Source: Trichoplax adhaerens
Taxonomy: Eukaryota > Animalia > Placozoa
Direction of reading: 5' to 3'
Length of the DNA: 64,000 nt
Assembly: GCF_000150275.1 (NCBI RefSeq)
Contig: NW_002060944.1
Span: forward strand, 313,614 to 377,613
Shown: one piece after another, positions 6,901 through 33,716 of the stretch
Position numbering within the stretch: the stretch's first letter is position 1
Layout: every line of letters starts with the position of its first letter
Notes under the pieces: generated by a model
Database searches by the model: none
Seen by the model: the letters and a program-made list of their open reading frames with translations, nothing else
Told to the model about the DNA's origin: nothing
Made by a program: the position numbers and the translations under genes

Positions 6901-8316
6901 TCTCGCACAAACATAGTACGTCATTTTTGGTGTATGATATTAGAGTTCAAAACTATTACTGTTGTGCAATCGATATTTCAGCCAAAGCTTAAGCTGGATT
7001 TTGTATTGCCATCATAAAGCAGCCAGTTTGGTTGAAATATTTCCTAATCTTGTTATAGTACGCCCTGGTATGGATCTTAAACTGTAGTAATGGAGAAACA
7101 TTGGCTACATTTTATATGAGATCCTGCGATACCATGAAAATTATGCACTTATTTAATCGCTATCTGATAGCAGCCTCGGCCGGTGGTCAAATTCATACGG
7201 TATGTCAAGTGGATTACTTTATTAAGCAACTCTTAGAAACTGCTCTAATAAAGTTTAATTTCATAATCGTAGTTTAAGCCTATGTAAATGTTATAGCGCA
7301 ACATGTGCATTATCGAATATCAAGATTAGCATATTTGAAGTTGATTAACATATTAATTTATTGCCTTAGCTTTGTTTTCTGCATGACGGTCTTTAGATAG
7401 TTAATTAGACTATTAAGTTGCTAAGCCGATGGTACTCTACTTTACTATTCACAAGTTAAATTGATTTACCTAGCAATAATTAGAATCATTCCTTTTGACA
7501 TTCACGGTATTAAGTAGGTCTGGAAATTAGATTCTAATTCCATTGAAATACTGGAAAAAATCCAACCAGATTTAAATGATATCAGTCTCTTATCTGTGTC
7601 TCATGTTGATATTACTGATACTGGTCCTAAAGTTCAAACAATATCAGTTCCGAAGCATAATGAATACTTCGATGGATGGCATATAGAATTTGAAAAACCG
7701 GTAAGAAAGATCAATAACCAAACTAAGATCTTTATAGGAAGATGCCGCTATATTAATGTACGCAATAACTATTCTGACCCTCTCGTCATCTGAAATCGGT
7801 AAAAAATTAGATGACTAAGAATGGCGTAGAAATTTATCGGGTTGAAAATGATCAACGGCAGCTAATTCAAAGCATGACAAATTTGAGCGGACAATCTTTA
7901 TTTATCGTTCGAAATGGGAAGGATTTTACGGTAACTGATCTCATTACTTTGCTTTTCATGATATAATTATCTTATACTGATATATAATTTTAAGTTAACG
8001 AACTTCCTTGATACTTTTAGGCATATAATAGTAACAACAATCTTTTAATGAAAGTCTACCGTGGAAAATACTGCTACCCTAGCCAACCATTGGAATATGA
8101 AGTCCAGCTATGGTCCGATAATGATCATACTCTAGCTACATATTATGACGAAACTATCCGACTTTATACCATCGAACATGAACATTGGTTTCATACCATC
8201 CAATCAAAAGAGTTAAAAGATCTGAAATTTATACAAATTAGTAATGAATTCAGTCTATGGGCCTATAAAACCTTGTGCTCCTGCCCTTACTATATCAAGC
8301 CTGTTTTACCTTCATT
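992..8316 (+). CDS. APAF1: APAF-1-like protein, multi-exon (end of HD1 / winged helix / HD2 / WD40-like propeller region). N-terminus unresolved; C-terminus probably continues into the micro-exon array
   Basis: Phase-consistent GT-AG exons: 992(or ATG 1000)-1087, 1475-1682, 2554-2860, 3009-3196, 3509-3659, 3890-3976, 4285-4458, 4710-4910, 5355-5690, 5804-6094, 6320-6484, 6775-6915, 7059-7199, 7518-7700, 7811-7930, 8021-8316. Translation LQLSIFEKGIPIPLTTISTFWEMSEDLVRSQLELIQKERL matches the APAF-1 winged helix. GYMHQQLVNHA..LLTNLHWIEVKFKA and DLIQFTLEHTADNELHHQAWQMA match the APAF-1 helical domain. ISPNGKIIA, EFSPNDNDVIISW..KVQVWK and AASAGGQIHTVWK are WD40-like. This is a divergent paralog, not necessarily the ortholog. 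Confidence 0.8.
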
Positions 8317-8844: not shown

Positions 8845-11800
8845 TGATAACGTTGAAAATATACCAATCATAATCAAGCCTTCTTCCGATGAAATGTAAC
8901 TATAAATTTATATTACTCCATTATTTTGTATTTATCATATATTTAGGTGTAAATATCTATTTGATCTTGTTCGTGTATCTTATACGTGAACGCTAATGTC
9001 AACTATTACTTCTATAATCGGCAATTAGAGCATTTAGACAACAAAAAGTTCGCTTCAATGAAGGAGATTTGATCAATCAAGGGTAATGAATGAAATCATA
9101 TTATTTTTTCTATTGCCTGATAGAAACATTCATGTACTTCAATTAACGTAGTATAGCATAGCCGTAATTTATTCCTATGATATTATCTATGTCCGTTGCA
9201 GCAGCAAAAGCATTCCGAGTGCTTTCTTAGCTGTTTGAGGTTAATTGTGATGTTGTAGAATTGTAGTTATCTCGATCGATCAAGATCTAAAAATTTAAAA
9301 GCTATTCCTATTTAATCTAACAATGTTGTTATACTAACGAAACCAAATAATTTTGATCATCTGCCACTTAGATCCCCTTCAGTGCAGAATACTGAAGAAG
9401 AAAGTCAAGTTATTAGTGAAACCATAACGTCGCAAATGTAATGCATCAATAATATTTAGCGATATCATTTGCTGCTCGGTGATTCATGAATTTTATTTAG
9501 TTAATTTCAATCAAAGAATAACGGTAGCGTTCTCTATGCATTTCTAATTATATTCATGAATGCGGTTAGTTGATAGATGATAATATAGCTATTGCTTAAT
9601 TTAAGCCATGTCGCTTTGATATTTCTACTGGAACCAATGACTAAACATCTACTCAATTTATGTTAAACTTAAAGGTTGTAATTATGCCATATCTGTTCAT
9701 GGAAATTGTCAATGCAAATTATTTTTAATACTTATAGCTATTCCGATGAAATCACAACTGTAGCAGATGTTCATACTAGCTGCCAACTGTAAGTAATTCC
9801 TTGCTTAATAAGACGAAATTTGTAATCTACTGCACAGTTCCTTAAATGGTGTCGCACTTGATTTTTATTTTAGAAATTCTGGCAATACTATGATAAAAGC
9901 AAATTCCCCTCCGATTCATGGGTAAATTTGATAATCTTTATTAGCTATTAGTACTCTATATCATTGAAGATGTGTATTATAGCTGAACTGCAAGTGCTCA
10001 CTTTTCATTTTTTATTCCTACAATTTAGTGAAGAAAATGCTCAGAGTATATCTAAAAATACGTTTCAAAGGTTAGTTAAGGTTAAGATAAGGCACAGATA
10101 CGAAAACTTTATATAATATGCGGTACTTCTTGTATGTTAATAGTCAAGAAACTGCTCAAGACAATCAAGAAGATGTACCACATCAACGGTAAGTTATATT
10201 AATTTAAAATCGATATTCGAAAAAATTTTTTATTTCTCTGATACATTAAATTTAAAGTAACACAAATTCAATCTGGTTTATCCTAGCCCTTTGCTTAGTG
10301 GGGATAATTTGAAAACGTTTGCTCTAGAAAAAACATCTGAACTGTTCGTCCCTTTTTTTCAATTTGAAATTAATTATTCAATGCCAGTCTATTGGCAGAA
10401 GTAAGTTAATTAACCGATTGTTTAATATTGTATAGATCTAATTCCAAGCCTGAAAATGCTTTAGACATTGAAAAAAAGACAGTAAAGACCCCGTAAGTAC
10501 AATGCATCGATTAGAAGTGCTGCAAATATCAAATTGTTAAGCAGTCGAGCTAACTTACGTTTCTTAATTGCCTATTTCTATAATAAAATTTAGGTTTAAT
10601 TTTAAGCCGAAAAAGGCAGCAGAAATTGATTGGACAACAACAATGAAGCAACAGTGAGTATTTGGCATGTAGAACTAGTCTTGAATTATAATTTACCTTC
10701 AAGTGATGTTGCGATTGATTATTGATTTCTTCAATGTCATCCAGATTTAATTCTAAGCCAGAGAATGAACTGGAAATTGAAGAAAAGAAAATGGAACAAT
10801 TGTGAGTATTCTGTATTTATGAGAAATTGAAGATAATCTTATATCATGCTGCAAGTAATGTAGTAATAATATGGTTATATCATATTTATACCCTCCATAA
10901 TATTTAGATTTAATTCCAAGCTTAGAAATGAGCCAAAAGAGGATTGGCTGTCAAATAAACCACTGTAAGCATATTGCATAAATTTGAAATTTAAGATAGG
11001 CTCTGATTTTAATCGATGTTGAAATATTCTAAGTATTTCAAACTTAAATGCGTATTTCTTTAAGATCGCCAAAGTTAAATTCCAAGCCTAGGATTGAACA
11101 AGATAGCTACTGGACGATGAAAAATCTACAGTATGTCCCTTTAATTTTCAAGAGTTTCTCAATTTGTAGTGGCTGTTTAAGTAATGTGCCTACTTACGGG
11201 TGATTTCTTGAATACTACCTAGATTAAAATTCGACCATGATAATATCCCAGATATAGAAAAGAAGCTATCTAAAAAATTGTGAATACAATCTATAGATCA
11301 GAAATTAAAAATGTACTCAGATTGAAATTCTTTGACATTAATGCAGCTATTTATTGCTTATTTCTTCAATATTGTCAGATTAAATTCTAAGCCTGAATAT
11401 GTACCAGACATTGAATGGCAGGAAATGAAAAAACAGTATTTAAATTAATTAGACATTTAAGATGTTCTTACAATTAATTTCTAAATGAAATGGTCGTTTA
11501 TTACTTATTTCTTTCACGATTATTTATTTGCCTGTTGCCGGAATATCTCCCAGACAAAAGTCTAAGGAAGAAAATACACCTGAAATTGAATGGAAAACAC
11601 TGAAGCAACAGTGAGTATATTCGGTTCATTAGGGATGCACGATATTACCTGGCTGAAAGCATTATCGAAATAAAGTTTTTTCTTTAGGCAGCAGCGATCA
11701 TATTAGATGAATTGATTTGTAAGGGTTATTTAATACGTTTTTTCTTCCTTTAATCATTTAGTGAAGAAAGTGTTCGTAAATTTGATAAGAATACTACACT

Positions 11801-14075
11801 TCGACGGTATGAATATTTTTCTACATCCTGTAACATTAGTTTAATAAATCAGCATTCATTTTATTAAATACGTGTGCTCAAATACCGTTGAAGTTCTAGC
11901 CAGCAGAGCTACAAACTAACAGAAGAAGTATTACCCACTTTATTGTAAATATGCGTCCTAATAATCTTGAAACTGCATTGAGAACGTAAAAGTAGTTTAA
12001 GTTAATTGTTGCTTCATTACTATTTAAGCAATACCATGGAAAGTGTAGACCCTGTGGAAAAGTTACCAGTCTTTCAGCTGTAATTTATACGATTTTTTAT
12101 TTAAACACCTCTAAAACCTGTTACCAGCGTGAATATTGTTTTCAATTTTTTAACAACTCTTTCCGGAAATTTTAGTATTGATAGTATTGAAATTCTGGAT
12201 GAAAATTTACCAATTCCACTGTAATCGAATTATTTCCTAATTAACTATTTAATATCTTATCTTAGCGTAACTAGTATTTTGAAGGAAATTTTTCTTAAAT
12301 TCTAGTAAGGAAAATATGGAAATTCAAGACGAAAATTTGCCAATTCCGCTGTATTGAAGTTTTGCAAATTTATCGTGCTCAGTTACAAAATTTTGCTATT
12401 TATTGACATTTACGTATTTTTATTTAGAAATGAGGGGAATGAAACGTCTGTTATGAAATTGCTTGATCTGCTGTAAGTTTTCCATACTGATACATGGGAT
12501 TGTTAGAAAATACTCTCGGTAGATATGAACTTGGGTGATCAAACTCTGTACTTAAAATCAATTTAAATAAAAATATACTTCAGTTTTACAATTTACTAGA
12601 CTTAATACGTGAAATTATACGTATTTTTTATATAGAGACGAGGAAGGAGAAATTCCGGTAGATGTTTTACCTCTTCAGACGTGAGTTTTATAGCTAAAAT
12701 GATTTAAATTAAAACAAATTTTAATTTTTTAGTTAACTCTAGCATATTCTTAATTAGCGATGAGGGAAAGGAAACTTTGGCGGAGAATTTACCTATTCTG
12801 ACGTAAGTTTTTAGACTTAAAAATGAATTAAATTATTACATATTTAATTTTCGCAATTATGAAATTTCATGTAAGCTTTTGAATATTTTTATTTAGCGAT
12901 GAAAGAAAGGAAACTTCAGTAGAGGAATTAGCCGTTTTAATGTTTGTTTTATAGTTAAAACAATTTTAGCTAATCTAATTTGAATTTTATAATTTATTAA
13001 AATTTTATAAATAAATTTTTAAATATTTTACATAGAGAAGAGGAAAAGGAAGCTCCAGTAGAGAAATTTCCTGTTTTGGGGTGAGTTTTATAGTTAAAAA
13101 AGACTTAGGTAGGACCACCTTTAATTTTTAAAATTTGCTAAAGTTTATACGTATATTTTTATATCTTTCTATCTAGGAGCGAGGAAAAGGAGTGTCCAGT
13201 GGAAAAATTACTAGATATGACGTAAATCTTATAATTAAAATATTTAAATAAGAACATGTTTAGATTTTATAACGTATTAAATTTTATCATTAAACTATTG
13301 TACATATTTTAATCTAGCTATAAGGGAAAAGAAACTCCAAAAGAGAAATCACCTGTTTTGACGTGAATTTTATAGTCAAAATGATTTCAATTTAAACGTA
13401 TTTAAGCCTTGCAATTTACTAAATATACACGTAAACTTGTACATATTTTTATCTACGAGTGAGGGAAATGAAACTCCAGCTGAGAAATTACCGGTTCCGA
13501 CGTGAGTTAATTTATTAAAATATGTAGGATTTAAAGACACTGATGGCGCTAAGTTTGACTTAAGAAGTAAATTTTTTTAATTTTACCTTTCAGAAAGGAA
13601 AGCTTGGAACAACCAGATGAAAACCTAGCCAAACAGGCGTAATCCTTAATTACTGCTATCTTGAAATTAATTTTAGTTATCAAGGATATTAACATCCATA
13701 ACTTCTAATTAATTTTCTGTTTTTAATGCTTTTAAACCATAATTTAGCCATACTTTTGAAGAAAATACACAAGATGGCCGCATCAATAATGAAAATACAC
13801 AAGACAATATCGTTATTAATAACGACAATATGCAACATTGCCACATTAATAATAAAGATATACAAGATAGCCATCCTTATAAAGAAAATACTCAAGTATT
13901 GAACAGGGACGTCGCCATTCAACGGTTACTTACATAACAACTAGCAGCTTTTTGTTTTCGGCCATTGATTATGAGTGCTTATTGGCCTAATTCTATGTTT
14001 ATAAATATCTTATTTATTTTCTATGTAGCAGCGAAGAGCTTCCGAAATCAGAAAAAGACAAATTAGTTATTATTC
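8845..14075 (+). CDS. Array of ~31 symmetric phase-2 micro-exons (proximal part), acidic low-complexity peptide
   Basis: AG/GT-bounded stop-free units, approximate start(length): 8845(51), 9029(54), 9372(66), 9738(51), 9874(48), 10029(42), 10144(45), 10436(57), 10594(60), 10745(57), 10908(57), 11065(66), 11223(57), 11379(57), 11554(57), 11762(45), 11900(45), 12029(51), 12176, 12306, 12428, 12636, 12758, 12897, 13036, 13177, 13318 (all 45), 13460(42), 13594(45), 13748(177), 14028(48). Each reads 1 nt + n codons + 2 nt. Confidence 0.85.
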
Positions 14076-14133
14076 GGTAATTGAAATCATTTAACTAAAA
14101 TTATAGGATCGATGAAACGGTTGGAAATAAAGA

Positions 14134-15026
14134 NNNNNNNNNNNNNNNNNNNNNNNNNNNNNNNNNNNNNNNNNNNNNNNNNNNNNNNNNNNNNNNNNNN
14201 NNNNNNNNNNNNNNNNNNNNNNNNNNNNNNNNNNNNNNNNNNNNNNNNNNNNNNNNNNNNNNNNNNNNNNNNNNNNNNNNNNNNNNNNNNNNNNNNNNNN
14301 NNNNNNNNNNNNNNNNNNNNNNNNNNNNNNNNNNNNNNNNNNNNNNNNNNNNNNNNNNNNNNNNNNNNNNNNNNNNNNNNNNNNNNNNNNNNNNNNNNNN
14401 NNNNNNNNNNNNNNNNNNNNNNNNNNNNNNNNNNNNNNNNNNNNNNNNNNNNNNNNNNNNNNNNNNNNNNNNNNNNNNNNNNNNNNNNNNNNNNNNNNNN
14501 NNNNNNNNNNNNNNNNNNNNNNNNNNNNNNNNNNNNNNNNNNNNNNNNNNNNNNNNNNNNNNNNNNNNNNNNNNNNNNNNNNNNNNNNNNNNNNNNNNNN
14601 NNNNNNNNNNNNNNNNNNNNNNNNNNNNNNNNNNNNNNNNNNNNNNNNNNNNNNNNNNNNNNNNNNNNNNNNNNNNNNNNNNNNNNNNNNNNNNNNNNNN
14701 NNNNNNNNNNNNNNNNNNNNNNNNNNNNNNNNNNNNNNNNNNNNNNNNNNNNNNNNNNNNNNNNNNNNNNNNNNNNNNNNNNNNNNNNNNNNNNNNNNNN
14801 NNNNNNNNNNNNNNNNNNNNNNNNNNNNNNNNNNNNNNNNNNNNNNNNNNNNNNNNNNNNNNNNNNNNNNNNNNNNNNNNNNNNNNNNNNNNNNNNNNNN
14901 NNNNNNNNNNNNNNNNNNNNNNNNNNNNNNNNNNNNNNNNNNNNNNNNNNNNNNNNNNNNNNNNNNNNNNNNNNNNNNNNNNNNNNNNNNNNNNNNNNNN
15001 NNNNNNNNNNNNNNNNNNNNNNNNNN
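14134..15026. other. Assembly gap (893 N)
   Basis: Run of N. The equivalent sequence is present in the second copy at ~22557-23590. Confidence 1.
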
Positions 15027-18000
15027 CAATGGATTGGTAATCTATGTTATGTTATGGATTCTATTGAAACTTATATCGGTAGACTAATTGTATTGGCTAG
15101 TTTAGGAAATCCTTAATTCTGAATTGGTGCTCTTTTCGCTATCAAAAATTTTAACTAAGATTGATTATACCATACTGGCTTCTACAGTATTTTCTATGCC
15201 CGATGTTACGTTTTAGAACCAGAAATAGTTATATTCACTTTGTATATCACTCATCCATATACTTTGTCTAGCTTAAATCACATTTTCATAACTATTTTAC
15301 TCACTAATGTTTGCAAGATGTTCCCATGATCAAGGTTTAAGTATTGAATATATAGGGTTAAGCGTAAACACACTTGAAATATCGTAAGATTTTTATAACT
15401 ATTTCTCTTATGACTTAAATATTTAGTAACGAAAATGTTGTAAATGCTGATAAAGACATAGTTAATAATAAGTAAGTAAATGATATTAAATGGCTAGAAT
15501 TCATCTTTTGGTTGACATTATTAAAAATACAAGATTTCGCGTTTTGAATTTTATAAAATTATAGAGCAGAAAAAGGGCAAATTGTAAAAGAAGATTCGTC
15601 TGATATTGCGTAAATAGCGTTTTTAATTCTCGTAAACCTCAATATAATTTTTTAGTACGTTTCTCTTGTAATAAATCTAAGCTAATTCATTAATAGTAAC
15701 GTTGACACTCGCGAGAAGGTGGATAAAATTAGAGCAAAGAGGTAATTCGAACGTATAAAATATCGCGTAAGATGTAATTCTTTACATCAATAGTTGGATT
15801 AAAGTATGATAAATTTTAAAAGTAAAAGTTTGCTTATTTTAGTGAAGAAATCATGCAAGAGACTAAAGCTGATTCCTCGAATATTACGTATGACATATAC
15901 CAGTATTTATAAATTTCTTGTCAAGTTTGTAATTTCCTGCTTATATTACGATTCTACGAAATGTAAATTTTGTCGATAGAAATGCTCAAGTTAAGGATAT
16001 TCCAATTGAAGTTTATAGGTAATTTTCAAAGTATTGTGTTCGAACAAATAGATGGTTATATTACGGCTTCTGCGTTATCTCCTAGACATACAGGAGGAAT
16101 TGCATATTTAGTATGATAAATATGAATGGATATGATTTGCTTATTGTAAATTATAGAGACAGAGTCCAAATCAATATGGAAGCTGCAATTAAAATGGCGT
16201 AATTTATACATTTTATATTTATAAATTGCTGAGATAAAATAAAACTAATTCTTTACATAATTTATATTATAGAGAAGAAAGCTTCGAAAATACTGAGAAA
16301 AGTTCATCCAATATATCGTAAGCTATATTTTTACTCTCATAAACTGCTGCTATAAAAGATAAATTTTACTGTTTTGCATATTTTTCCTTGCAAGCTACTA
16401 TGATGAAATATAAATTTAAACGTTTATCATTTTAAATGTAGAGAAGAAAGTACCGTTAACATTAAGGGAAATTTATCTAATGTCATGTAATTCATGTTTT
16501 TATGCTTACAATATACGCCACTTTATATTTATGTAATGCTATGTTATAACATAGCATTACTTATAATCCGCTTTGCTTAAGTTCTAGCGATCGAAATATC
16601 CAAGTCTTGAACGATTAGCTTGGAGCCAATTAAAAATTTCAATCTTAATTGCCTATTAACTCCGAGCTTAACTTTAATTCTGACCAAATACAGAAATTAC
16701 GCAAACTAGAAATTAACATTTTTATAATTTATTATGTGCTAAAACAATTTTATTTTACACGGAGTAATCTTTTATGAACATAAGTGATAAATTTTAGTAC
16801 TAACTGCTAGGCTGCTTTTCAATTTAATAAGATAAAGCACATTTTTCTATTTATGTAATGTAGTAAAGAACCTGGGCAAAGCCCTGATTTCAATTTAGCC
16901 TCTACATCGTATGTTTATTTCCGCTAGATTGCTTTGATAACATTTTCGTTAAATTAGCTTCACCTTCTAGTAATTTCAATTTTTACAGTTCCAGTATTAA
17001 TAACCGAGAAATTTGCAATAAGGAGAAGCGGTAATGATGATGAAGTCAATTAATTAGCTTGTAAATTTGTTCGATTGCATTTATATAACTATTTTATCAA
17101 TTACATTATCGTAATTTCATTGTGGTAAACAATTTACATTAAAATTTTGAACAATTTCGAAACGGCTTCTAAATGATGTAAATATTTATAATTCAAAAGT
17201 CACTATGGGCTTAAATTTTCATAGCCGTATGTTAAAATTATTATCATACTTTCTTAAAAGCTGGTAAAAATCTATATAGATTGTTATTGATAGCCTAAAA
17301 AATAATCGACCCTGAGATTTTCTACCGTTATTTCAGTCCTGAACAATCTAATGATCATGACGCAAGCTATCAAAATCTTCAAGAATCGAGGTATGGAATA
17401 CTCTTACAATTTTATCTTACATTCTATAACTACTCAGCAGTATTAAAATTAAATTTTGACTTGAAAAGATATTATTAATTTTCAGTTCAGTAGAAGATTC
17501 TTGCTCGATAATTAAAAAATCACCTCGTTCGAAGTAAGAAATAGATAGCTGGCGGAATGTATCAAGATAATATATATTTATTGACATACTTTGCATACGT
17601 AATTTATTTTTTAAATGATGACATTATGGCTTTTAGAATTGCTAGGAATGGTATAGATTCAGTGGATGATTGTTTAGCTCAAGAGCGGTAAGACAGAATT
17701 TAGCTAGGAAATTACTATAACAATTACAGCTATGTACAATAGGTAGTATCGAATTTTGCAACGTGTAAACTAAAACCGCACTAACATCAATAATATCAGA
17801 ACTACGGAAAATATTGATTTAATAGAAGATCCTTTAGCCCGAAAGAAGTAAGGCATGCTCTGAATACTAAGATGTCAGATCATAAATCTACTACTAGTTA
17901 TAAGTATGTACTACAGATTGCAATATATTACGTAATTTATAATTGGTGCTGCTTATAGAGTTACGCAAGACATCAGTTTAACGGATAATTGCTCATTACA

Positions 18001-19439
18001 GGAGGAGTAAGTTTAAACTATGTCGAAATAACATCCAATTGTAAATCTTGGATAAGATTTTTTAAGAGAATTTTTTATTGTTTAAGCTTAAGTCATGTCC
18101 ATTATTTAGTATTGCAGAAATAAGTGTCAGCTTAGCTGATAAACAGTCTGCGCAAGGGAGGTAAGTCAAATAAGGTTCCAGAATATAATAAAGCTATAAT
18201 AAATTCTATTACCAAGGGTAGCTGCAAATAAACTGATATAAGGTCAACATTATCATTAGCTCAGAGCTGTGCAAGTTAATGTTGTTTTAGTTGATAATTA
18301 ATAATTAATCAGTCATGACAAGAAATATTTTTAAACAAATTTAAATCGTCATATGTCGGAATAGTTTTAATTATCTTAGGATAGGAGTTAATGGCCATTT
18401 ACCGTACAAAAATAAATTAGGGCACAATTTTTTATTTTAGAGCTACAGAAGAAGTTATCGACTTGGTAGATGATGGCTCACGTCATTGGTATGATATGAA
18501 ACTGTATTTTGCATTCACTGGTTTCATGGTTTTGCTTATAGAGAAGCTTACAACTATGCTGGTTATATATATATATCTGATGAATAATTCATTCTTTTTT
18601 TGTTAGTATCAGTTCTGGAGAAGAAGCTCTTAATTTACCACATGATAATTCGAGCTTACTATGGTACGACAAACTTGTGGTTGCGAGCAATTAATTTTTG
18701 TGGATAAATTATTTTTAATCGTGGGCACAAAGTATCTCTAATCATTCTTTCACTCTACAACAAAGCAATGATTAATCATTATACTGTATTATTAGTTTAC
18801 AATATGTAGAATAAAGCAAAATCTTCAATGACAATTTAAAAAAATTGCACTGTTGGATAAATCTGACTATTTCGTATTTTTAATTTTGTCTATTGCGATA
18901 GTTACTACGTATCCTATATAAGTTTTGCTTTACTACGCAAATAAAATTATGTTAATAAGATACAGCTAATTTTGCGCTTATAACTGCTAGTGATGAAAAC
19001 ACTCAACAGCTTCTTGACAATTCCATCAAGCAGATGTAAATATTTTCTTGTCATTATCATGAGCTGTATATTATAGATCAGGATGTATTTAGTCCTGTAC
19101 ATTTAAAATCCAATGTGAAATATTCTCTAGCAGGGAAAATTCTATAGTAATAACTATGCATATTCGTTGCGATTTTATTTGCTATTAAAGTGATAAAAAC
19201 AATCACACCAGGGAGAATGAGATCGGAAGTTGCGAAGAAAATTCTACATATCAATCGTAAGTGAGACGATCATCAAACGAACCTAGTAGTCTATGATGAG
19301 TGTTGCTTACTGAGCTAAGTGGTCAATGAACTGGTATAAAATGAAGTTTTATAGCGAGTAATAAATTTAAATTCCTTTTTCCTGCAGTTCAGGTTCTATT
19401 GAAGGAGGTAATGGTTATGTAGAGTCTGTCAACCGGTAA
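15027..19439 (+). CDS. Micro-exon array, distal part, copy A (~22 phase-2 exons plus a putative terminal exon 19388-19439)
   Basis: Same AG/GT, 3n, phase-2 pattern, e.g. NENVVNADKDIVNN, EEIMQETKADSSNI, TTENIDLIEDPLARK. Homologous to 23591-28141. Confidence 0.75.
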
Positions 19440-21318
19440 AGTTGAAAGAACCTTTAGCCGAATCTTCAAACTGCTTTGAAAGACCTGTTCATCTCTTGGA
19501 AACATTTGTTTTATCGTAGAATAAGTAAAATAGATATGGATGAGTCTGCACTTAGATTCATAATAACTTAGTAATCTTTTCGCTGTAGATTGGATTTGCA
19601 ATATCATTTTTTCCTTATTGTTATGATCTATTCTTAGTTGATACTTTGCTTTAAATTGCAATAGATATATTAAAACACTTATGATCAATAAGCTTAGATA
19701 GCTTTCAGTTTTATAAATTAAATTTGAACAAATGCCATTCTAATTCTGTATTAGTTTCATGCCGATTTCTACTATATTGATTATGTGATATTTTCCTTTG
19801 GAAATTGCGGTGTTGCTTGTAATTCGTAATTTTGATCAATAAATATAATTGGGTACGGAACATATATAGATTTCTCTATTTTCTTCTATTTAAATAAATT
19901 ATAAATCTTTCACTTGGGATATCTGAATGAATCTTTTCTTTTCCGTGTAAAATATTCATAAAAATAAGGTATGGGTTATTGCAATATCTTAAGTAATATA
20001 TATGACATAGAATTGAATCCGCTCGAATCTCTAAAATTTAGTAAGTAACAACACAGATAAAATAATAAATTCAAATTCTATCATAGTTCTTTGTACCTCG
20101 ATTTAATATATTGCTTCTGTACCGTAAATGGGATTATAGTAACCAGTCTAATATAAATTGTAGTAATTGAACACTTATACCGGTTTACTATATTTTAAAA
20201 ATAAAATTCTGTTTATTCTAATGCCGTCAAAAAGTTACGAGATAAATTAATTTTTAACTACTGTACGTAATTTGATCGACCTAAATTATTAAATTTTAAC
20301 GATTGAAAACGGCCGTGACTTGTACAGTTAGTCATTCCATAGTCTGTAATAGAGTAACAGAGGGATGTATATTACATAGCTTGGTGAGGATAGTGTATCA
20401 GTCGATACACAGATTTATAATTAATTAATTATATTATGAACTGCTGCTTGAGGGTGAAACTCTAATTTTATGATTGCCTACATAGAGATTAGTTCTCAGG
20501 CGCTTAACTTATATGAAAATAAAACTAAATTAGCTATAAAATATCCACATAGTCGATTTTACCATCAGGTCGCGATGCAGTGTGTAGCAAGTAAACATCT
20601 AATTGTACTTTTACTGCTATCGATTAAACCTTCCGCACGAAAATATTAAAATTTGAATGTATGGTTTCGTAGGATGTGTCTTCGTGAAGCCCGATTTTTG
20701 TATGATACCTATTCGTAAGTGCCGAAATATATAGTACTGTACGAGCACTTGCGTGATAATTTTTGGTAAAATCCCGGGAAACGCAAAAAAAGTTATCTCT
20801 AGTCATGAATCTATTTATCTAACGAAGTTATTCCAAAAGATTAAGCAGCGATAATAAGCAGCTCCATCATTCTCTAAAATCACAGTGGTATGATACATCT
20901 CATAACTGATGCCGCTATTTTAGAGTGTACGCGTAATTTAGAACTAAATGATGTCATCGTATTGATTTGAAATTGGGTATTGTCGTGTTCAGCTCACGAC
21001 AAGGAAATCTGGGTCTTTAAATCCGTATAAATACTAAGGCTATAACAGCCAAATGTGCCCCCAATGGGTTAAGAGTAGACTAGACTTATGCTTTTAAATT
21101 AGTTTATTAAATCAAGGTAGTCTTGACATCCAAGACTACTCTAACTACACGCGTATACTATACGGTCAATCGTCAACTAACTAGCTAATGAGAGCANNNN
21201 NNNNNNNNNNNNNNNNNNNNNNNNNNNNNNNNNNNNNNNNNNNNNNATGATTAATTATTACATATTTAATTTTCGCAATTATGAAATTTCATGTAAGCTT
21301 TTGAATATTTTTATTTAG

Positions 21319-24300
21319 CGATGAAAGAAAGGAAACTTCAGTAGAGGAATTAGCCGTTTTAATGTTTGTTTTATAGTTAAAACAATTTTAGCTAATCTAA
21401 TTTGAATTTTATAATTTATTAAAATTTTATAAATAAATTTTTAAATATTTTACATAGAGAAGAGGAAAAGGAAGCTCCAGTAGAGAAATTTCCTGTTTTG
21501 GGGTGAGTTTTATAGTTAAAAAAGACTTAGGTAGGACCACCTTTAATTTTTAAAATTTGCTAAAGTTTATACGTATATTTTTATATCTTTCTATCTAGGA
21601 GCGAGGAAAAGGAGTGTCCAGTGGAAAAATTACTAGATATGACGTAAATCTTATAATTAAAATATTTAAATAAGAACATGTTTAGATTTTATAACGTATT
21701 AAATTTTATCATTAAACTATTGTACATATTTTAATCTAGCTATAAGGGAAAAGAAACTCCAAAAGAGAAATCACCTGTTTTGACGTGAATTTTATAGTCA
21801 AAATGATTTCAATTTAAACGTATTTAAGCCTTGCAATTTACTAAATATACACGTAAACTTGTACATATTTTTATCTACGAGTGAGGGAAATGAAACTCCA
21901 GCTGAGAAATTACCGGTTCCGACGTGAGTTAATTTATTAAAATATGTAGGATTTAAAGACACTGATGGCGCTAAGTTTGACTTAAGAAGTAAATTTTTTT
22001 AATTTTACCTTTCAGAAAGGAAAGCTTGGAACAACCAGATGAAAACCTAGCCAAACAGGCGTAATCCTTAATTACTGCTATCTTGAAATTAATTTTAGTT
22101 ATCAAGGATATTAACATCCATAACTTCTAATTAATTTTCTGTTTTTAATGCTTTTAAACCATAATTTAGCCATACTTTTGAAGAAAATACACAAGATGGC
22201 CGCATCAATAATGAAAATACACAAGACAATATCGTTATTAATAACGACAATATGCAACATTGCCACATTAATAATAAAGATATACAAGATAGCCATCCTT
22301 ATAAAGAAAATACTCAAGTATTGAACAGGGACGTCGCCATTCAACGGTTACTTACATAACAACTAGCAGCTTTTTGTTTTCGGCCATTGATTATGAGTGC
22401 TTATTGGCCTAATTCTATGTTTATAAATATCTTATTTATTTTCTATGTAGCAGCGAAGAGCTTCCGAAATCAGAAAAAGACAAATTAGTTATTATTCGGT
22501 AATTGAAATCATTTAACTAAAATTATAGGATCGATGAAACGGTTTGGAAATAAAGATATTTCTTACCTTTTGGACTGTGCTACTTGCGTATAACTTTTAG
22601 GAAAGAAAATTATCAAACTTTGAAAATTAACGCTCTAGACTACTCGTAATACCTTCTTACGTTAACATAAAATATTTGCATTACTTTTGTTTAGTACCTT
22701 TAAAATACTTTTATCTGTAATCAAACCATAATGTTACCACCGTCAGAAATTCTAGTCATCCGTTTATAAGATCTATTATTATCTGCTCTTTAGAATCATA
22801 CTGCGATATTTTGCTTTAATGTGCATTCTTGCAACTTTACAGATTTGAATATTTAATGCTGACATATTCATTTCTTAAAAGTCGTAATTGTCCATAACTT
22901 TTGCTGCAGGAAAAATGGAGGGCATGATAAATTGATAGAAGATAGCTCAAATATTCGAAAGTAAAATCGTCACAAAATTTTGTTGGTTTAACTCGTTAAC
23001 AAATACGACTAGATTTTGTTTTTAATTTCAGTAATTGTGTGGAACTTGAAACTCAGAATGATAGTTCGGAACCTCAGAAGTAATTTGATATACGTTATCA
23101 ATTTAATTGCTTTAAAGTGCGCAATTTAACTTACACATATGTCAAATACTGTAGTGAAAGAAATTTGAACATTATTGACAAATCTGAACCCGTTATTGGG
23201 TAACTTGAACATATTTGGTATCCTTCATCCATTAACAGCTTTCAGAAATGTTGTTGCTTTTACTCGTATTTTACTTATATAGGCTCGTATCCGTTAATAA
23301 AGCGAATACCAATATACTTACTCCAAAGTAATTCATAAATTTCTCATATTGATATTAGAACGTAAATTATTTCACTCAGAAAAATTAATGAGTTTGTGAG
23401 TTAATTTTATTTACTCCTAAATTATTAGGCTAGAAAATGGTAACATTCCTGAAAGAAATTCATCTCCTCGGTAAATATTCATTGCTTTAGTATTTTGTAG
23501 AGATGATTATCGCTTTAAAGAATTTATGTGCTTTCTATAAACCTACAAGTTGCACTGAAGAAAGTGTTCCAATGGCCGAAGAAAATTCAGCAATGGATTG
23601 GTAATCTATGTTATGTTATGGATTCTATTGAAGCTTATATCGGTAGACTAATTGTATTGGCTAGATTAGGAAATCTTTAATTCTGAATTGGTGCTCTTTT
23701 CGCTCTCAAAAATTTTAACTAAGATTGATTATACTATACTGGCTTCTACAGTATTTCTTATGCCCGATGTTACGTTTTAGAACCAGAAATAGTTATAGTT
23801 ACTTTGTATAGCATTCATCCATATACTTTGTCTAGTTTAAATCACATTTTCATAACTATTTTACCCACTAATGTTTGCAAGTAGTTCCCATGATCAAGGT
23901 TTAAGTATTGAATATTCAGGGTTAAGCGTAAATACACTTGAAATATCGTAAGATTTTTATAACTATTTCCCTTATGACTCAAATATTTAGTAACGAAAAT
24001 GTTGTAAATGCTGATAAAGACATAGTTAATAATAAGTAAGTAAATGATATTAAATGGTTAGAATTCATCTTTTGGTTGACATTATTTAAAATACAACATT
24101 TCGCGTTTTAAATTTTATAAAATTGTAGAGCAGAAAAAGGGCAAATTGTAAAGGAAGATTCGTCTAATATTGCGTAAATAGTATTTTTGATTCTCGTAAA
24201 CCTCAATATAATTTTTTAGTATGTTTCTCCTGTAATAAATCTAAGCTAATTCATTAATAGTAACGTTAACACCCACGAGAAGGTGGATAAAATTAGGGCA

Positions 24301-27300
24301 AAGAGGTAATTCGATAGTATAAAATATCGCGTAAGATGCAATTCTTTACATCAATAGTTGGATTAAAGTATGATAAATTTTAAAAGTAAATGTTTGCTTT
24401 TTTCAGTGAAGAAATCATGCAAGAGACTAAAGCTGATTCCTCGAATATTACGTATGAAATATAGCAGTATTTATAAATTTCTTGTCAACTTTGTAATTTC
24501 CTGCTTATATTACGATTCTACGAAATGTAAATTTTGTCGATAGAAACGCTCAAGTTAAGGATATTCCAATTGAAGTTAATAGGTAATTTTCAAAGTATTA
24601 TGTTCGAACAAATAGATGGTTATATTACGGCTTCAGCGTGGTAATTTTCAAAGTATTATGTTCGAACAAATAGATGGTTATATTACGGCTTCAGCGTGGT
24701 AATTTTCAAAGTATTATGTTCGAACAAATAGATGGTTATATTACGGCTTCAGCGTTATTTCCTAGACATACAGGAGGAATTGCATGTTTAGTATGATAAG
24801 CTGAATGGATATGATTTGCTTATTGTAAATTATAGAGACAGAGTCCAAATCAATATGGAAGCTGCAATTAATATGGCGTAATTTATACGTTTTATAATTA
24901 TAAATTGCTGAGATAAAATAAAACTAATTCTTTGTATAATTTATATTATAGAGAAGCAAGCTTCGAAAATACTGAGAAAAGCTCATCCAATAAAACGTAA
25001 GCTATATTTTTGGGCTTATAAACTGTTACTATAAAAATACTGTTTTACTGTTTTGCATATTTTTCCTTGTAAGCTACTATGATGAAATATAAATTTAAAC
25101 GTTTTATCATCTTTAAACATAGAGAAGAAAGTATCGTAAACATTAAGGGAAATTTATCTAATGTCATGTAATTCATGTTTTTATGCTTACAATATACGCC
25201 ACTTTATATTTATATAATGCTATGTTATAGCAACGAATCTGCTTTGCTTAAGTTCTAGCGATCGAAATATCCAAGTCTTGAACGATAAGCTTGGAGCCAA
25301 TTAGTAATTTCAATCTTAATTACCTATTAAGTCCGAGCTTAACTTTAATTCTGACCAAATACAGGAATTAGGCAAACTAGAAATTAACATTTTTATAATT
25401 TATTATGTGCTAAAACAATTCTATTTTACACGGAGTAATCTTTTATGAACATAAGTGATAAAATTTTGTTCTAACAGCTAAACTGCTTTTCAATTTAATA
25501 AGACAAAGCGCATTTTTGTATTTGCGTAATGTAGTAAAGAACCTGGGCAAAGCCCTGATTTCAATTTAGCCCCTACATCGTATGTTTATTTCCGCTAGAT
25601 TGCTTTGATATTATTTTCGTTAAATTAGCTTTCACCTTCTAATAATTTCAATTTTTACAGTTCCAGTATTAATAACCGAGAAATCTTTAATAAGGAGAAG
25701 CGGTAATGATGATGAAGTCAATTAATTAGCATGTAAATTTGTTCGACTGCATTTATATAACTATTTTATCTATTACGTTATCGTAATTTCATTGTGGTAA
25801 ACAATTTACATTAAAATTTTGAATAATTTCGAAATGGCTTATAAATGACGTAAATATTTATGATTCAAAGTCACTATGGGCTTAAATTTTCATAGCCGTA
25901 TGTTAAAATTATTATCATACTTTCTTAAAAGCTGGCAAAAATCTATATAGATTGTTATTGATATCCTGGAAAATAATCGACCCTGAGATTTTCTACTGTT
26001 ATTTCAGTCCTGAACAATCTAATGATCATGACCCAAGCTATCAAAATCTTCAAGAATCGAGGTATGGAATACTCTTACGATTTTATCATACATTCTATAA
26101 CTACTCAGCAGTATTAAAATTAAATTTCGACTTGAAAAGATATCATTAATTTTCAGTTCAGTAGAAGATTCTTACTCGATAATTAAAAAATCACCTCGTT
26201 CGAAGTAAGAAATAGATAGCTGGCGGAATGTATCAAGATAATGTATATTTATCGATAGACCTTGCTTACGTAATTTATTTTTTAAATGATAACATTATGG
26301 CTTTTAGAATTGCTAGGAATGGTATAGATTCAGTGGATGATTGTTTAGCTCAAGAGCGGTAAAACATAGAATTTAGCTAGGAAATTGCTATAACAATTAC
26401 AGCTATGTACAATAGGGAGTATCGAATTTTGCTACGTATAAACTAAAACTGCACTGCCATCAATAATATCAGAACTACGGAAAATATTGATTTAATAGAA
26501 GATCCTTTAGCCCGAGAGAAGTAAGGCATGCTCTGAATATAAAGATGTCAGATCATAAATCTACTACTAGTTATAAGTATATACTACAGATTGCAATATA
26601 CTACGTAATTTATAATAACTCGTGCTGCCTATAGAGTTACGCGAGACATCAGTTTAACGGATAATTGTTCATTACAAGAGGAGTAGTTTAAACTTTGTCG
26701 AAATAACATACAATTGCAACATCCAATTGTAAATCTTGGATAAGTTTTTTAAGAGAATTTTTGATTGTTGAAGCTTAAGTCATGTCCATTATTTAGTTTT
26801 GCAGAAATGTGTGTCTGCTTAGCTGATAAACAGTCTGTGCAAGAGAGGTAAGTCAAATAAGGTTCAAGAATATAATAAAGCTATAATAAGTTCTATTACC
26901 ACGGGTAGCAGCAAATTAACTGATACAAGATCAACATTATCATCAGCTCAGAGCTGTGAAAGTTACTATCGTTTTAGTTGATAATTAATAATTAATCGGT
27001 CATGACAAGAAATATTTTTAAACAAATTTGAAGTCGTGATACGTCGGAAGAATTTTAATTATCTTTGGATAGGACTTAATGGCCATTTTCCGTACAAAAA
27101 TAAATTAAGGCCACAATTTTTAATTTTAGATCTGCAGAAGAAGGTATCGACTTGGTAGATGATGGCTCACGTCATTGGTATGATATGAAACTGTATTTTG
27201 CATTTACTGGTTTCATGGTTTTGCTTATAGAGAAGCTACATCTATGCTGGTGATATATATATATCTGATGAATAATTCATTTCTTTTTTTGGTAGTATCA

Positions 27301-28141
27301 GTTCTGGAGAAGAAGCTCTTAATTTACTGCATGATAATTCAAGCCTACTTTGGTACGGCAAACTTGTGGTTGAGAGCAATTAATTTTTGTGGATAAAGTA
27401 TTTTTAATTGAGGGCACAAAGTATCTCTAATCATTCTTTCATGCTACAGCAAAGCAATGATGAATCATCATACTGTATTATTAGTTTACAATATGTAGAA
27501 TAAAGCAAAATCTTCATTGACAATTTAAAAAAATTACACTGTTCGATAAATCTGACTATTTCTTATTTTTAATTTAGTCTATTGCGATAGTTACTACGTA
27601 TCCTATTTTAGTTTTGCTTTACTCCGCAAATGAAATTATGTTAATAAGATACAGCTAATTGTATTGTAGCTAATTTTGCGCTTTATAATTGCTAGTGACG
27701 AAAACACTCAACAGCTTCTTGACAATTCCATCAAGCAGATGTAAATATTTTCTTGTCATTATCATGAGCTGTATATTATAGATCAGGATGTATTTAGTCC
27801 TGTACTTTTAAAATCCAATGTGAAATATTTCCTTGCAGGGAAAATTCTATAGTAATAACTATGCATATTTGTTGCGATTTTATTTGCTATTAAAGTGATA
27901 AAAACAACCACACCAGGGAGAATGAGATCAAAAGTTACGAAGAAAATTCTATATATCAATCGTAAGTGAGACGATCATCAAACGGACCTGGCCGTCTATG
28001 ATGAGTATTGCTTAGTGAGCTAAGAGATCAATGAACTGGTATAAAATGAAGTTTTATAGCGAGTAATAAATTTAAATTCCTTTTTCCTGCAGTTCAGATT
28101 CTATTAAAGGAGGTAATGGTTATGCAGAGTCTATCAACTAG
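21319..28141 (+). CDS. Micro-exon array, copy B (8 duplicated proximal exons, 28 distal exons, putative terminal exon 28093-28141)
   Basis: Distal exons, approximate start(length): 22910(51), 23032(48), 23155(45), 23283(45), 23429(42), 23550(51), 23882(39), 23990, 24129, 24261, 24407 (45), 24544(39), 24836(42), 24952, 25123, 25259, 25535 (45), 25661(42), 26008(54), 26157(48), 26308(51), 26473(48), 26635(48), 26797(51), 27130(48), 27296(57), 27695(45), 27896(66). All are phase 2-2 and stop-free. Confidence 0.8.
24582..24755 (+). repeat. 58-bp perfect tandem repeat x3 in an intron
   Basis: Unit ggtaattttcaaagtattatgttcgaacaaatagatggttatattacggcttcagcgt at 24582, 24640 and 24698; single copy at ~16018 in copy A. 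Confidence 0.95.
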
Positions 28142-30310
28142 TAAAGTTGATAGAACCTTCAGCTGAATCTTCAAGCTGCTTTGAAAGACCTGTTCATCTC
28201 TTGGAAACATTTGTTTTATCGTAGAATAAGTAAAATAGATATGGATGAGTCTGAACTTAGATTCATAATAACTTAGTAATCTTTTCGCTCTAGGTTGGAT
28301 TTACAATATCATTTTTTCCTTATTGTTATGATCTATTCTTAGTTGATGCTTTGCTTTAAATTGCAATAGATTTATTAAACACTTATAATCAGTAAGCTTA
28401 GATAGATTTCCGTTTTATAAATTGAATTTGAACAAATACCATTCTCATTCTATATTAGTTTCATGCGGATTTCTACTATATTGATTACGTGATATTTTCC
28501 TTTGGAAATTGCGGTGTTACTTGTAATTCGTAATTTTGATCAATAAATATAATTGGGTACGGAACTTATATAGATTTCTCTATTTTCTTCTATTTGAATA
28601 AATTATAAATCTTTCACTTGGGATATCTTAATGTATCTTTATCTTTTCCGTGCAAAATATTCATAAAAATAAGGTATGAGTTATTTCAATATTTTAAGTA
28701 ATATATAAGACATAGAATTAAATCCGCTCGAATCTCTTAAATTTAGTAAGTAACAACACAGATAAAATGATAAACTCAAATTCTATCATGTTGCTTTGTA
28801 CCTCGATTTAATATATTGCTTCTGTACCGTAAATGGGATTATAGTAAACAGCCTAATATAAATTGTACTAATCGAACACTTATACTGGGTTACTATATTT
28901 TAAAAATAAAATTCTGTTTATTCTAATGCCGTCGAAAAATTACTAGATACATCAATTTTTAACTACTGCACGTAATTTAATCGACCAAATTTATTAAATT
29001 TTAACGATTGAAAACAGCAGTGACTTGTACAGTTAGTCATTCCATACTCCGTAATAGAGTAACAGAGTGATATATATTACATAGCTTGGTGAGGATAGTG
29101 TATCAGTCGATACACAGATTTATAATTAATTAATTGTACTATAAACTGCTGCTTGAGGGTGAACTCTAATTTTATGATTGTCTACTTAGAGATTAGTTAT
29201 CAGGCGCTTAACTTATATGAAAATAAAACTTAATTAGCTATAAAATATCCACTTAGTCGTATTTTACCATCACGTCGCGATGCAGTGTACTGCAAGTAAG
29301 CATCTAATTGTACTTTTACTGCTATCGATTAAACCTTCTATACGAAAATATTAAAATTTGAATGTATGGTTTTGCAGGATGTGTGTTCGTGAAGCCCGAT
29401 TTTTGTATGATATCTATTCGTAAGCACCGAAATATATAGGAGAATTTAGTGAGGAAAATGGAAAATACGATGGACATTGGCAGAGATCGTGTTGATTGTT
29501 AAGTAGTTGGACTGTTGTTTTATGACTAAATCTTGATGTTTAAAGGTTGATTTTTAGACTTTTATAGTGTATTAATGATAAAAATTATGTTAGAAGTGAA
29601 GTTTGATGTATTTTTATAGTTAGCTTGTTAGTTCTATAGTGTTATGTAAGGGAATCATAGGGTAAATTGTGTCTGAACTTTGAGTGATTTTTGTTTTCTT
29701 AAATGGTGCAATGTAGTTTTGTAAAACGGATCTTAAGAGCGATTGGTTAGCAAATGTTTAGTTTTAAATACCTCTGACGGCTCTACGAAGCTTGTAAATG
29801 ATAGTGCAATTAGAAAATTTAGAGGGAGAGTAGAAGAAGATTTTACTTGAAGAACTTGTTGAATTTAAAAGGCCTTCGGGGTCGAATCGTCGTAAGTTAG
29901 AACGTTCTTCTTTTTGAAAGGTTGTTTGGTCATTGACAGTTTTTAAGTCTGTCATTTATTTTAATAATACTTAAAGCTAAGTATTTGCAAGGTCGTTCGG
30001 TTTATACTTCTCTCGATTTTTGTTTTGTAATAAATTGTTGTTCGGTTATTTCCCCAAATTTTATTATGGTGTCAAAGTATTAGCGTTAAGTAGACCGTAA
30101 TGCAACGAAAGTAGAAGCAAAGTTTGTTAAAGTTTTGTAGCTTGATCTCTACACTTTTCATTTCATTACATAAGAAATTTCCTCTTAGAAAATTATGCTA
30201 TGCGTATGAGTTAAGGCTTTTTTTCATAGGAAATTCTGCAAAATACCTAAAGTATTTCAGGTATTTTGCCGAATGCCAGATTTCGCAAATTGCCGTTGAC
30301 ATATGTTAAA

Positions 30311-33666: not shown

Positions 33667-33716
33667 NNNNNNNNNNNNNNNNNNNNNNNNNNNNNNNNNN
33701 NNNNNNNNNNNNNNNN

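Follow-up and report, generated by a model that had tools for sequence, protein, structure and literature searches.

Organization of the locus

The window, i.e., the whole 64,000-nucleotide stretch of Trichoplax adhaerens DNA analysed here, carries a gene with CARD, APAF1_C and propeller-type exons and, adjoining it downstream, a long array of very short candidate exons. Domain matches identify the upstream gene as Apaf-1-like, i.e., as a CARD/APAF1_C/propeller gene. The APAF-1 helical domain (PF17908, HD2) is matched at 2525–2905 (5e-11, 43 bits, with a cut-off of 22.8), and the second half of PF17908 at 3009–3197 (E = 0.038). A putative CARD (PF00619) is matched in two halves on two adjacent exons, one covering positions 1–35 (E = 0.017) and the other positions 46–85 (E = 4.8e-5, 23.7 bits vs. 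a cut-off of 23.9), and a WHD-like exon aligns with a paralog. A genome-wide six-frame scan lists no match to NB-ARC (PF00931) at the locus (303–408 kb of the contig), and this domain may be split over small exons. Single exons of the gene give no Pfam WD40 match, and the last propeller exon matches the WD40 repeats of bacterial STAND proteins (E = 3e-6). An exhaustive representative protein search with this last exon recovered no annotated full-length model; its only matches were WD40 proteins from bacteria and a single ORF of 110 aa (P0002), whose contig (L014) carries propeller-type exons like those of the neighbouring paralog and no array in the 1.7 kb downstream.

The Apaf-1-like gene and at least two paralogs form a cluster, in which it is colinear with the downstream paralog. 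The paralogs are tail-less, stopping a few residues past the equivalent of 8316. The neighbouring paralog has an array of its own, which sits at a quite different place in that gene and shows no homology to the present array by blastn or tblastx, and a third paralog, ~55 kb upstream, has no clear array. A nearby TPR ORF returned no record under an exact look-up. The end of the Apaf-1-like gene and the first part of the array are organized as follows.

8021..8316, + strand: open segment with the last propeller-type exon of the CARD/APAF1_C gene (weak similarity to WD40 proteins)
8845..10343, + strand: block of eight non-repetitive phase-2 exons of 42–66 nt (exon calling)
10436..11610, + strand: eight tandem exon+intron units with a period of ~160 bp (exon calling, unit comparison)
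11762..13638, + strand: ~14 exons of 42–51 nt (exon calling, unit comparison)
13748..13924, + strand: sole 177-nt exon, with internal 30-nt (decapeptide) repeats (exon calling)
14029..14076, + strand: final exon ahead of an assembly gap (exon calling)

The open segment at 8021–8316 ends in TT/GTAAGT, and an in-frame stop codon TAA (8318–8320) lies inside this donor, which places the predicted intron in phase 2. The donor that overlaps the stop is perfect and has the same phase as the array.

Architecture of the array and its predicted product

Between 8845 and 28275, the + strand holds purine-rich units of the form YAG-exon-GT, spaced ~140–160 bp apart and bordered by (T/C)AG and GT, all of which have a length divisible by three (3n, mode 45 nt), are phase 2 and contain no stop codon. 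These units were called by dynamic programming that required only flanking AG and GT, a length of 3n and a frame open at offset 1, with a crude score for sites and purines. This yielded 100 units in 8300–30000, including the first and last units of the preliminary description (8845; 28093–28140). The non-redundant path (8845–14076 plus 22601–29419) contains 64 units with a sum of 3,174 nt, every one of them 3n and phase 2. Their lengths are 45 nt (26 units), 48 nt (7), 51, 42 and 57 nt (6 each), 39 nt (5) and, once, 177 nt; the acceptors are TAG in 47, CAG in 15 and other in 2, and the median intron is ~96 nt. The caller erred at 12266–12304, where the correct unit is 12306–12350. Overall, the non-redundant array comprises about 60–64 exons and roughly 1,000 residues. 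Neither a clear terminal exon nor a clear poly(A) site was found for the array. An own-genome search found, besides the two local copies described below, one 176-nt fragment with 81% identity.

Two blocks have a repetitive substructure. The exons of 10436–11610 are 57–60 nt long and encode 19-mers of the FNSKPEN..(I)E(W)K type, whereas ten exons in 11762–13638 form a 45-nt family of the DEGKETP.EKLPVL type with a period of ~140 bp, in one unit of which the acceptor is displaced by exactly 3 nt.

Pooled per-exon residues have a mean hydropathy of 0.397 (vs. a boundary of 0.448) and a net charge of −0.09 per residue. In this composition test, the charge–hydropathy boundary places all six blocks among disordered sequences, and the exons of the upstream gene score as folded, in agreement with the disordered region of ~1000 residues that had been suggested from the letters of the DNA alone. 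The four exons of at least 20 aa have no significant Pfam match, and the peptide of the 177-nt exon has no public protein match in a homology search limited to proteins of 32–101 aa.

The number of such units far exceeds chance. In 8300–21196, the setting of the array (+ strand, 3n, offset 1) gives 59 units, versus 9–35 in 17 other settings of strand, offset and length class and 18.05 ± 3.2 (maximum 26) in sequence simulated with a second-order Markov model. The excess of ~13 SD is confined to a single strand and phase and to 3n lengths. The array of 3n, phase-2, stop-free micro-exons claimed by the preliminary description is real by this measure, the blind caller having found these 59 units in 12 kb (18 ± 3 simulated), and the 3n/phase enrichment is borne out. 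Splice-site matrices trained on 8.8–14.1 kb were also applied elsewhere, using no length or frame information. Outside the training region, 32 of the 58 predicted pairs were 3n, and 20 of the 58 were both 3n and open; control DNA gave 2 such pairs out of 71, and the minus strand none out of 32.

Two copies and assembly gaps

Beyond 14 kb, the array is interrupted by assembly gaps, and part of it is present twice, as listed here.

14134..15026: assembly gap of 893 N, the content of which is supplied by 22557–23590 of the second copy
15027..20734, + strand: copy 1 (contig B), distal array with gaps on both sides (self-comparison, exon calling)
20735..21196: sequence unlike copy 2 (sequence comparison)
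21197..21246: gap of 50 N, with the second copy directly behind it (sequence comparison)
21247..29439, + strand: copy 2 (contig C; self-comparison, exon calling)
29444..30172: insertion of a ~730-bp high-copy repeat, 25 nt downstream of the last conserved exon in copy 2

The sequence at 21247–29439 duplicates 12823–20734, so that ~8 kb are redundant, with 93–99.8% identity. The 50-N gap is not a continuation, as the letters that follow it begin again at the position equivalent to 12823. Identity is 99.8% between 21247–22556 and 12823–14133, and 93–95% between the distal array of copy 2 (23591–29439) and 15027–20734. As it also begins exactly at the end of the 50-N gap, the second copy is probably an uncollapsed haplotype. 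The array is therefore present in the 19.3-kb span first assigned to it, but the extent of the locus had been overstated by ~8 kb of second copy. The first gap is bridged by the 1,034 nt of 22557–23590, which hold six further 3n, phase-2 candidate exons, and RNA contigs whose match breaks off at 14122 carry on with the letters of 22545 onwards. Copy 1 has ~24 exons up to 19570 and a possible last exon at 20673–20714; three further calls (20011–20040, 20353–20394 and 20493–20579) have a stop or frameshift in the second copy and are probably not exons. A family of dispersed repeats, of which there are at least 40 copies, supplies the last 216 nt of 20735–21196. The two copies of the array are not alike in exon content, and two exons are dead in copy 1.

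Evolutionary maintenance of the exons

Comparison of the copies shows that the units behave in evolution like real coding exons and are maintained by selection. From copy 1 to copy 2, 24 of 27 predicted exons are intact, the three broken ones all lying beyond 20 kb, and in the opposite direction 22–23 of 26 are. Within the array, 23 of 23 exons are intact, versus 12.3 ± 2.4 in simulations with intronic mutation rates (maximum 20 in 5,000 runs). None of the 21 indel events between the copies is exonic (P = 0.019), and substitutions amount to 4.6% in exons and 6.0% outside (P = 0.07). The tandem units, which have diverged by ~36%, all keep the 45-nt length and the open frame, whereas their introns carry indels. 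Between organism B and the window, the sole exonic indel is an insertion of 30 nt in the 177-nt exon of organism B, in frame and open, and the sole 1-nt indel is intronic; 8 of the 40 listed substitutions are exonic, and no stop is created. These results give good support to the array as coding sequence that evolution has maintained. Constraint at the peptide level is weak: substitutions are spread evenly across the three codon positions, and pN/pS is ~0.5, barely better than in the wrong frames, although with weak constraint and saturation the three-frame comparison (between copies and among tandem units) does not discriminate.

RNA evidence

The RNA evidence consists of contigs of four assemblies, not raw reads, and covers 8845–14133, i.e., the first ~32 exons. 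Over this range, the four assemblies contain no sense AG/GT junction, though pieces down to 28–32 nt were aligned. Five junctions were found, from three RNA sets and two organisms, and all are canonical GT..AG introns of the minus strand.

10770..10891, − strand: GT..AG intron (RNA contig of X17)
11270..11471, − strand: GT..AG intron (X17, organism B, and X22, organism A)
11580..11648, − strand: GT..AG intron (X17; a loose end of an X22 contig fits the same joint)
13211..13586, − strand: GT..AG intron (X20)
13753..13933, − strand: GTAAGT..AG intron that excises almost exactly the 177-nt sense exon (X20)

The RNA contigs, up to 6.8 kb long, are otherwise colinear with the genome through the proposed introns, and other putative RNA runs contain 0–4% of the words of the stretch, versus an estimated ~14% expected for a spliced mRNA. 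The junctions anticipated at the AG/GT sites are therefore absent from the four assemblies over the first ~32 exons, which show antisense joints only. This result weakens the claim of expression without refuting it. On present data, the array is not supported as an expressed gene and still less as a generator of diversity.

Interpretation of the array

We lean towards the reading that this is a real coding array of ~60 exons with a disordered product, most likely forming an optional C-terminal tail of the upstream Apaf-1-like gene. When the stop-overlapping donor (TTG/TAAGT) is not spliced, an ordinary short protein would result, as in the paralogs; when it is spliced, translation would continue in frame into the array and add an acidic, low-hydropathy, intrinsically disordered stretch of ~1,000 residues. 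The array would have grown partly by tandem duplication of exon+intron units. Since all exons are 3n and share one phase, the array would tolerate it if any unit were duplicated, lost or resized in frame. This turnover of units is visible as an evolutionary process, not as a shown somatic diversification. We infer, rather than observe, present sense transcription and splicing of the array, its attachment to the Apaf-1-like mRNA, and any function, be it as a tether, an autoinhibitory tail or a bait.

An unlikely but realistic alternative is that the array forms a separate gene, which codes for a long disordered protein, has its own first exon (ATG 8822, MILFDLLSDNVENIP...; MILFDLLS) and merely adjoins the Apaf-1-like gene. 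One ATG-initiated exon between 8318 and 9400 does share the donor at 8895 and has the correct phase, the end of the Apaf-like ORF is comparable to that of the tail-less paralogs, and the different place of the paralog's array in its gene agrees with such independence. However, the perfect GTAAGT over the stop in the phase of the array would then be a coincidence, estimated at roughly 1 in 100; no evidence of a promoter or transcript start was found, and the assemblies hold no sense RNA of such a gene over 8845–14133.

It is rather improbable that the array is a recently retired coding region, long translated but now silent in the sense direction, over which a loosely spliced, long non-coding antisense RNA takes the pyrimidine-rich complement of old exons as acceptor tracts. 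The exclusively antisense junctions in three runs from two organisms, the long colinear RNA contigs, the repeats that immediately follow the last conserved exon of each copy, the two dead exons of copy 1 and the weak peptide constraint all point in this direction. However, exon integrity between the copies is far above neutral, with exons free of indels; the exonic indel relative to organism B is in frame; and a live gene tolerates the death of a single symmetric exon.

The preliminary description had proposed a potential combinatorial-splicing gene; that ~60 cassette exons are left out in many different combinations, so that the protein is diversified, we consider very improbable. The symmetry of all exons, which keeps the frame after any skip, the immune-type locus (PMC6321704) and the differing exon content of the copies would suit it. 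However, no sense junction, and hence no skipped junction, is seen in the RNA contigs over 8845–14133, and growth by exon duplication explains the symmetry equally well. Finally, a chance product of AT-rich, purine-patchy DNA or a non-coding minisatellite is effectively refuted by the control settings, the Markov simulations and the integrity of exons between copies, for although the crude caller yields ~1.5 pseudo-exons per kb in any DNA of the genome and two array blocks are tandem repeats, more than 40 units are non-repetitive.

Comparison with known systems

Arrays of symmetric exons encoding disordered regions are a general principle (Schad et al. 2013, PMC3632108), of which the titin PEVK spring is the classic case, with documented differential splicing (PMC11040099). 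The Trichoplax array shares with these systems many short 3n exons of the same phase in tandem, each of which contributes a short piece to an unstructured region that is charged and of low complexity. It also shares with them its growth through duplicated exons and a reading frame that stays intact when exons are gained or lost. We note differences from titin. First, the Trichoplax exons are shorter (mode 45 nt), and P (4.8%), E (13.1%), V (5.4%) and K (8.7%) together make up about 32% of residues and are not dominant. Second, the probable host gene is Apaf-1-like (CARD/propeller type) and does not encode a muscle protein.

Schistosome micro-exon genes (MEGs) have exons of 3–81 bp and introns of up to 5 kb and encode small secreted proteins, and the 35 MEGs listed are specific to S. 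mansoni (bioRxiv 10.1101/2023.06.21.545858). They resemble the present array in that the coding sequence consists almost wholly of very short symmetric exons, the product evolves fast, and the gene is hard for gene predictors, whereas the Trichoplax array has introns of ~100 nt, a product of ~1,000 residues and a cytosolic-type setting. No homology of the array to schistosome MEGs was found.

Placozoans possess an expanded family of Apaf-1 paralogs (Kamm et al. 2019, PMC6321704), which the upstream gene resembles in its putative CARD, its APAF-1 helical domain and the propeller-type exons that come after them. Neither disordered tails nor arrays of micro-exons are described in that paper, and the words micro-exon and intron are absent from it; searches of the literature on Trichoplax microexons and on placozoan symmetric exons with disorder returned nothing on such arrays. 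As the protein searches, which have blind spots, found no public protein with the 177-nt exon or the last exon of the upstream gene, placozoan Apaf-1 gene models may be truncated.

Implications

The most far-reaching version of the tail hypothesis, which we regard as a long shot, sees the array as a rapidly evolving tail that would give an Apaf-1-like death sensor a bait or tether. It would be attached through a splice-or-stop donor, and its symmetric exons would allow allelic and perhaps somatic gain, loss and resizing. In placozoans, such an intracellular immune sensor would be diversified through a disordered micro-exon tail rather than through LRRs, and a RHIM-like amyloid motif would lie in an analogous array of the neighbouring paralog. 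Should the tail be expressed, an early-branching animal would use ~60 exons to join a disordered region of ~1,000 residues to an apoptosome-type sensor, via a donor site hidden in a stop codon. This would represent a new domain architecture for the Apaf-1/NLR world. It would also illustrate, in a clean natural case, how disordered regions can lengthen, shorten and differ between haplotypes when they are encoded by symmetric micro-exons.

Exon units and chance controls

Between 8.8 and 14.2 kb, a unit is repeated that consists of a pyrimidine tract, (T/C)AG, a purine-rich open stretch of 45–60 nt and GT(A/G)AG. An exon caller was run whose only criteria were AG..GT, a length divisible by 3 (3n), a frame open at offset 1 and a rough score. 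It found 59 non-overlapping units on the + strand of 8300–21196; when strand, frame offset and length class were varied, the 17 alternative settings gave 9–35 units each, and second-order Markov simulations gave 18.05 ± 3.2. The preliminary description had listed about 59 stop-free, phase-2, 3n units, called chance an unlikely source and proposed a check for 3n and phase enrichment; its figures and end points were reproduced, and the enrichment is evident from these counts. Enrichment of 3n lengths (32 of 58 called pairs) was also obtained with splice-site matrices that took no account of length or frame and were trained on one part before being used on the others; 20 of 58 pairs were both 3n and open, vs. 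2 of 71 for control DNA and 0 of 32 for the minus strand. A non-redundant path called 64 units (3,174 nt in total), with a mode of 45 nt (26 units), a range of 36–66 nt plus one unit of 177 nt, and TAG or CAG acceptors in 62 of the 64. Four of these calls are probably wrong, and about 60 is a fair count of array exons.

The upstream Apaf-1-like gene

The window is G000:C1413:313614–377613; the assembly comprises 105.6 Mb in 1,414 contigs with roughly 30% GC, and the locus is found in two coded sources, organism A (about 100% identity) and organism B (about 98%). Directly before the array lies a multi-exon gene on the + strand, whose putative CARD is encoded as two halves on neighbouring exons of the stretch L005 (E = 0.017 and 4.8e-5), followed by an APAF-1 helical domain (PF17908, 2525–2905, 5e-11; second half at 3009–3197) and propeller-type exons that continue to 8316. 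No NB-ARC was detected at this locus, and the gene is therefore named Apaf-1-like rather than Apaf-1. It is colinear with a paralog 55–80 kb downstream; an expansion of Apaf-1 paralogs is known in placozoans (PMC6321704).

The last propeller exon terminates in TT|GTAAGT, the stop codon TAA of its ORF being donor bases 2–4; the intron is therefore of phase 2, the phase common to the entire array, and TT with the first base of exon 8845 forms a Phe codon. The unspliced protein would finish in ...YYIKPVLPSL, near the ends of the paralogs. A donor overlapping the stop would yield a short form if unspliced and a tailed form if spliced into the array, which suggests a splice-or-stop choice between two forms of the Apaf-1-like protein. 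Alternatively, the array could be an independent gene with its start at the ATG at 8822.

Two copies of the distal array

The window contains two assembly gaps, gap 1 (893 N, 14134–15026) and gap 2 (50 N, 21197–21246), which delimit contigs A, B and C. The stretch 21247–22556 equals 12823–14133 at 99.8% identity, and 23591–29439 equals 15027–20734 at 93–95%; we refer to 15027–20734 on contig B as copy 1 and to 21247–29439 on contig C as copy 2. The counterpart of gap 1 in copy 2 (22557–23590, 1,034 nt) carries six more 3n phase-2 exon candidates, and RNA contigs leaving at 14122 proceed with the letters of 22545 onwards, so the frame is carried over this gap, provided that copy 2 represents the missing sequence fairly. 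Across gap 2 the sequence does not continue, as copy 2 starts at the first base after it. Because homology with contig A reaches the extreme ends of both contigs and contig B is bordered by gaps on either side, an uncollapsed allelic contig seems moderately more likely than a true tandem duplication of 8.4 kb. Beyond the common end (20734 in copy 1, 29439 in copy 2), dispersed repeats follow in both copies, and the assembly holds no third copy of the array. A 176-nt match (81%) to 17285–17460, which includes exon 17337–17390, sits on the same contig some 18 kb before the window starts (G000:C1413:295773–295924) and may be a stray copy of a single array unit.

Other features of the window and of its extension are as follows.

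20981–21196: terminal stretch of contig B, belonging to a 216-bp dispersed repeat family (at least 40 copies, 75–95% identity)
29444–30172: repeat of about 730 bp, inserted 25 nt past the final conserved copy-2 exon; several hundred first-look candidates at 94–95% identity across the genome
31166–31411: 129-bp tandem repeat, 1.9 units, 79% matches, in the repeat-rich stretch behind the array
33644–34444, − strand: 266-aa ORF split by a 50-N gap, without a Pfam match
39375–41534, + strand: intronless ORF of 719 aa with TPR-type 42-residue repeats (tandem periods of 126/252 nt), which may form the repeat arm of an NB-ARC-TPR gene
59661–60641, + strand: intronless rhodopsin-family GPCR ORF (Pfam 7tm_1, E = 1e-15)
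65.7–84 kb, window-extended (L002–L004, stretches of the downstream paralog; G000:C1413:379.3–397.6 kb): paralog array

Constraint on exon integrity

Constraint on the exon sequence itself is weak. Between the copies, 4.6% of exonic and 6.0% of other positions are substituted (P = 0.07); the substitutions are spread evenly over codon positions, with a pN/pS of about 0.5 that is hardly frame-specific. Of the 40 listed differences that separate organism B from the window, 8 are exonic, the exons being 32% of the stretch.

Constraint on exon integrity is strong. Intact in copy 2 (AG, GT, 3n, open) are 24 of 27 predicted copy-1 exons; the other three all lie past the 20-kb position and do not belong to the array proper, within which the count is 23 of 23. 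When neutral change was simulated with the intronic rates observed, 12.3 ± 2.4 stayed intact and never more than 20 (5,000 runs). In the reciprocal test from copy 2 to copy 1, 22–23 of 26 exons are intact, and none of the 21 indel events between the copies touches an exon. Tandem units about 36% diverged retain 45 nt and an open frame, with indels in their introns and, in one unit, an acceptor displaced by exactly 3 nt. Organism B carries a 30-nt insertion, in-frame and open, in the 177-nt exon (13748–13924), and its sole 1-nt indel falls in an intron. Judged from sequence, this pattern is the signature of a putatively translated, fast-evolving disordered region. By charge and hydropathy, all array blocks are of disorder type, whereas the exons of the upstream gene are not. 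Array exons were queried one at a time, and the four of at least 20 aa had no significant Pfam match.

RNA from the locus

Four RNA or probable-RNA assemblies were aligned to 8845–14133; these data are contigs, which lose rare forms. Pieces of 28–32 nt were placed, and no sense junction was found at the proposed AG/GT sites. All five RNA junctions, from three assemblies and two organisms, read CT..AC on the + strand, i.e., they are canonical minus-strand GT..AG introns, several of which have a GTAAG donor and a good pyrimidine tract; the antisense acceptor tracts are the complements of purine-rich sense exons. One junction is common to both organisms, and the intron 13753–13933 excises almost exactly the 177-nt sense exon. 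The contigs, up to 6.8 kb, are otherwise colinear through the proposed introns. Antisense, loosely spliced RNA is thus present in 8845–14133, and a sense mRNA was not assembled in the four samples. This result is the principal evidence against expression of the array; it makes expression today less likely but does not refute it. Of the preliminary description, the observation holds and the interpretation is supported in part, for real, disorder-encoding exons, which the comparison of the copies indicates to be under selection; for the combinatorial splicing it proposed, nothing speaks in favour.

Known systems and the downstream paralog

Symmetric exons encoding disorder are a known architecture (PMC3632108), of which the PEVK region of titin is an example (PMC11040099). 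The array shares this architecture (PMC3632108, PMC11040099); with a P+E+V+K content of only 32%, it does not pass the composition test for a titin PEVK region. Unlike in schistosome MEGs, long introns are not a feature of the array (10.1101/2023.06.21.545858). A literature search returned no description of such exon arrays in placozoans. The downstream paralog carries an array of its own, with about 65 symmetric exons of phase 1, placed between the N-terminal part of the gene and the WHD exon, whose acceptor (84105) has the same phase; the paralog array and the present one are not homologous in sequence. One exon of the paralog array (L003:2508–2669) encodes IFNQAGIQIGSQY, a RHIM-like core.

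Turnover of exons

Two exons show presence/absence variation between the copies: 25259–25303 is intact in copy 2, but its copy-1 counterpart (16588–16632) carries a stop and has lost the donor; for 23885–23947, the acceptor AG of copy 2 reads TG in copy 1 (15321–15383). A perfect 58-bp tandem repeat in three units (24582–24755) starts at the donor of exon 24544–24582, which thereby has three donors in copy 2, vs. a single 58-bp unit in copy 1; 58 is not divisible by 3. Since the exons are symmetric, losses such as those of 25259–25303 and 23885–23947 preserve the frame. The demonstrable diversity of the array is evolutionary or allelic, not somatic.
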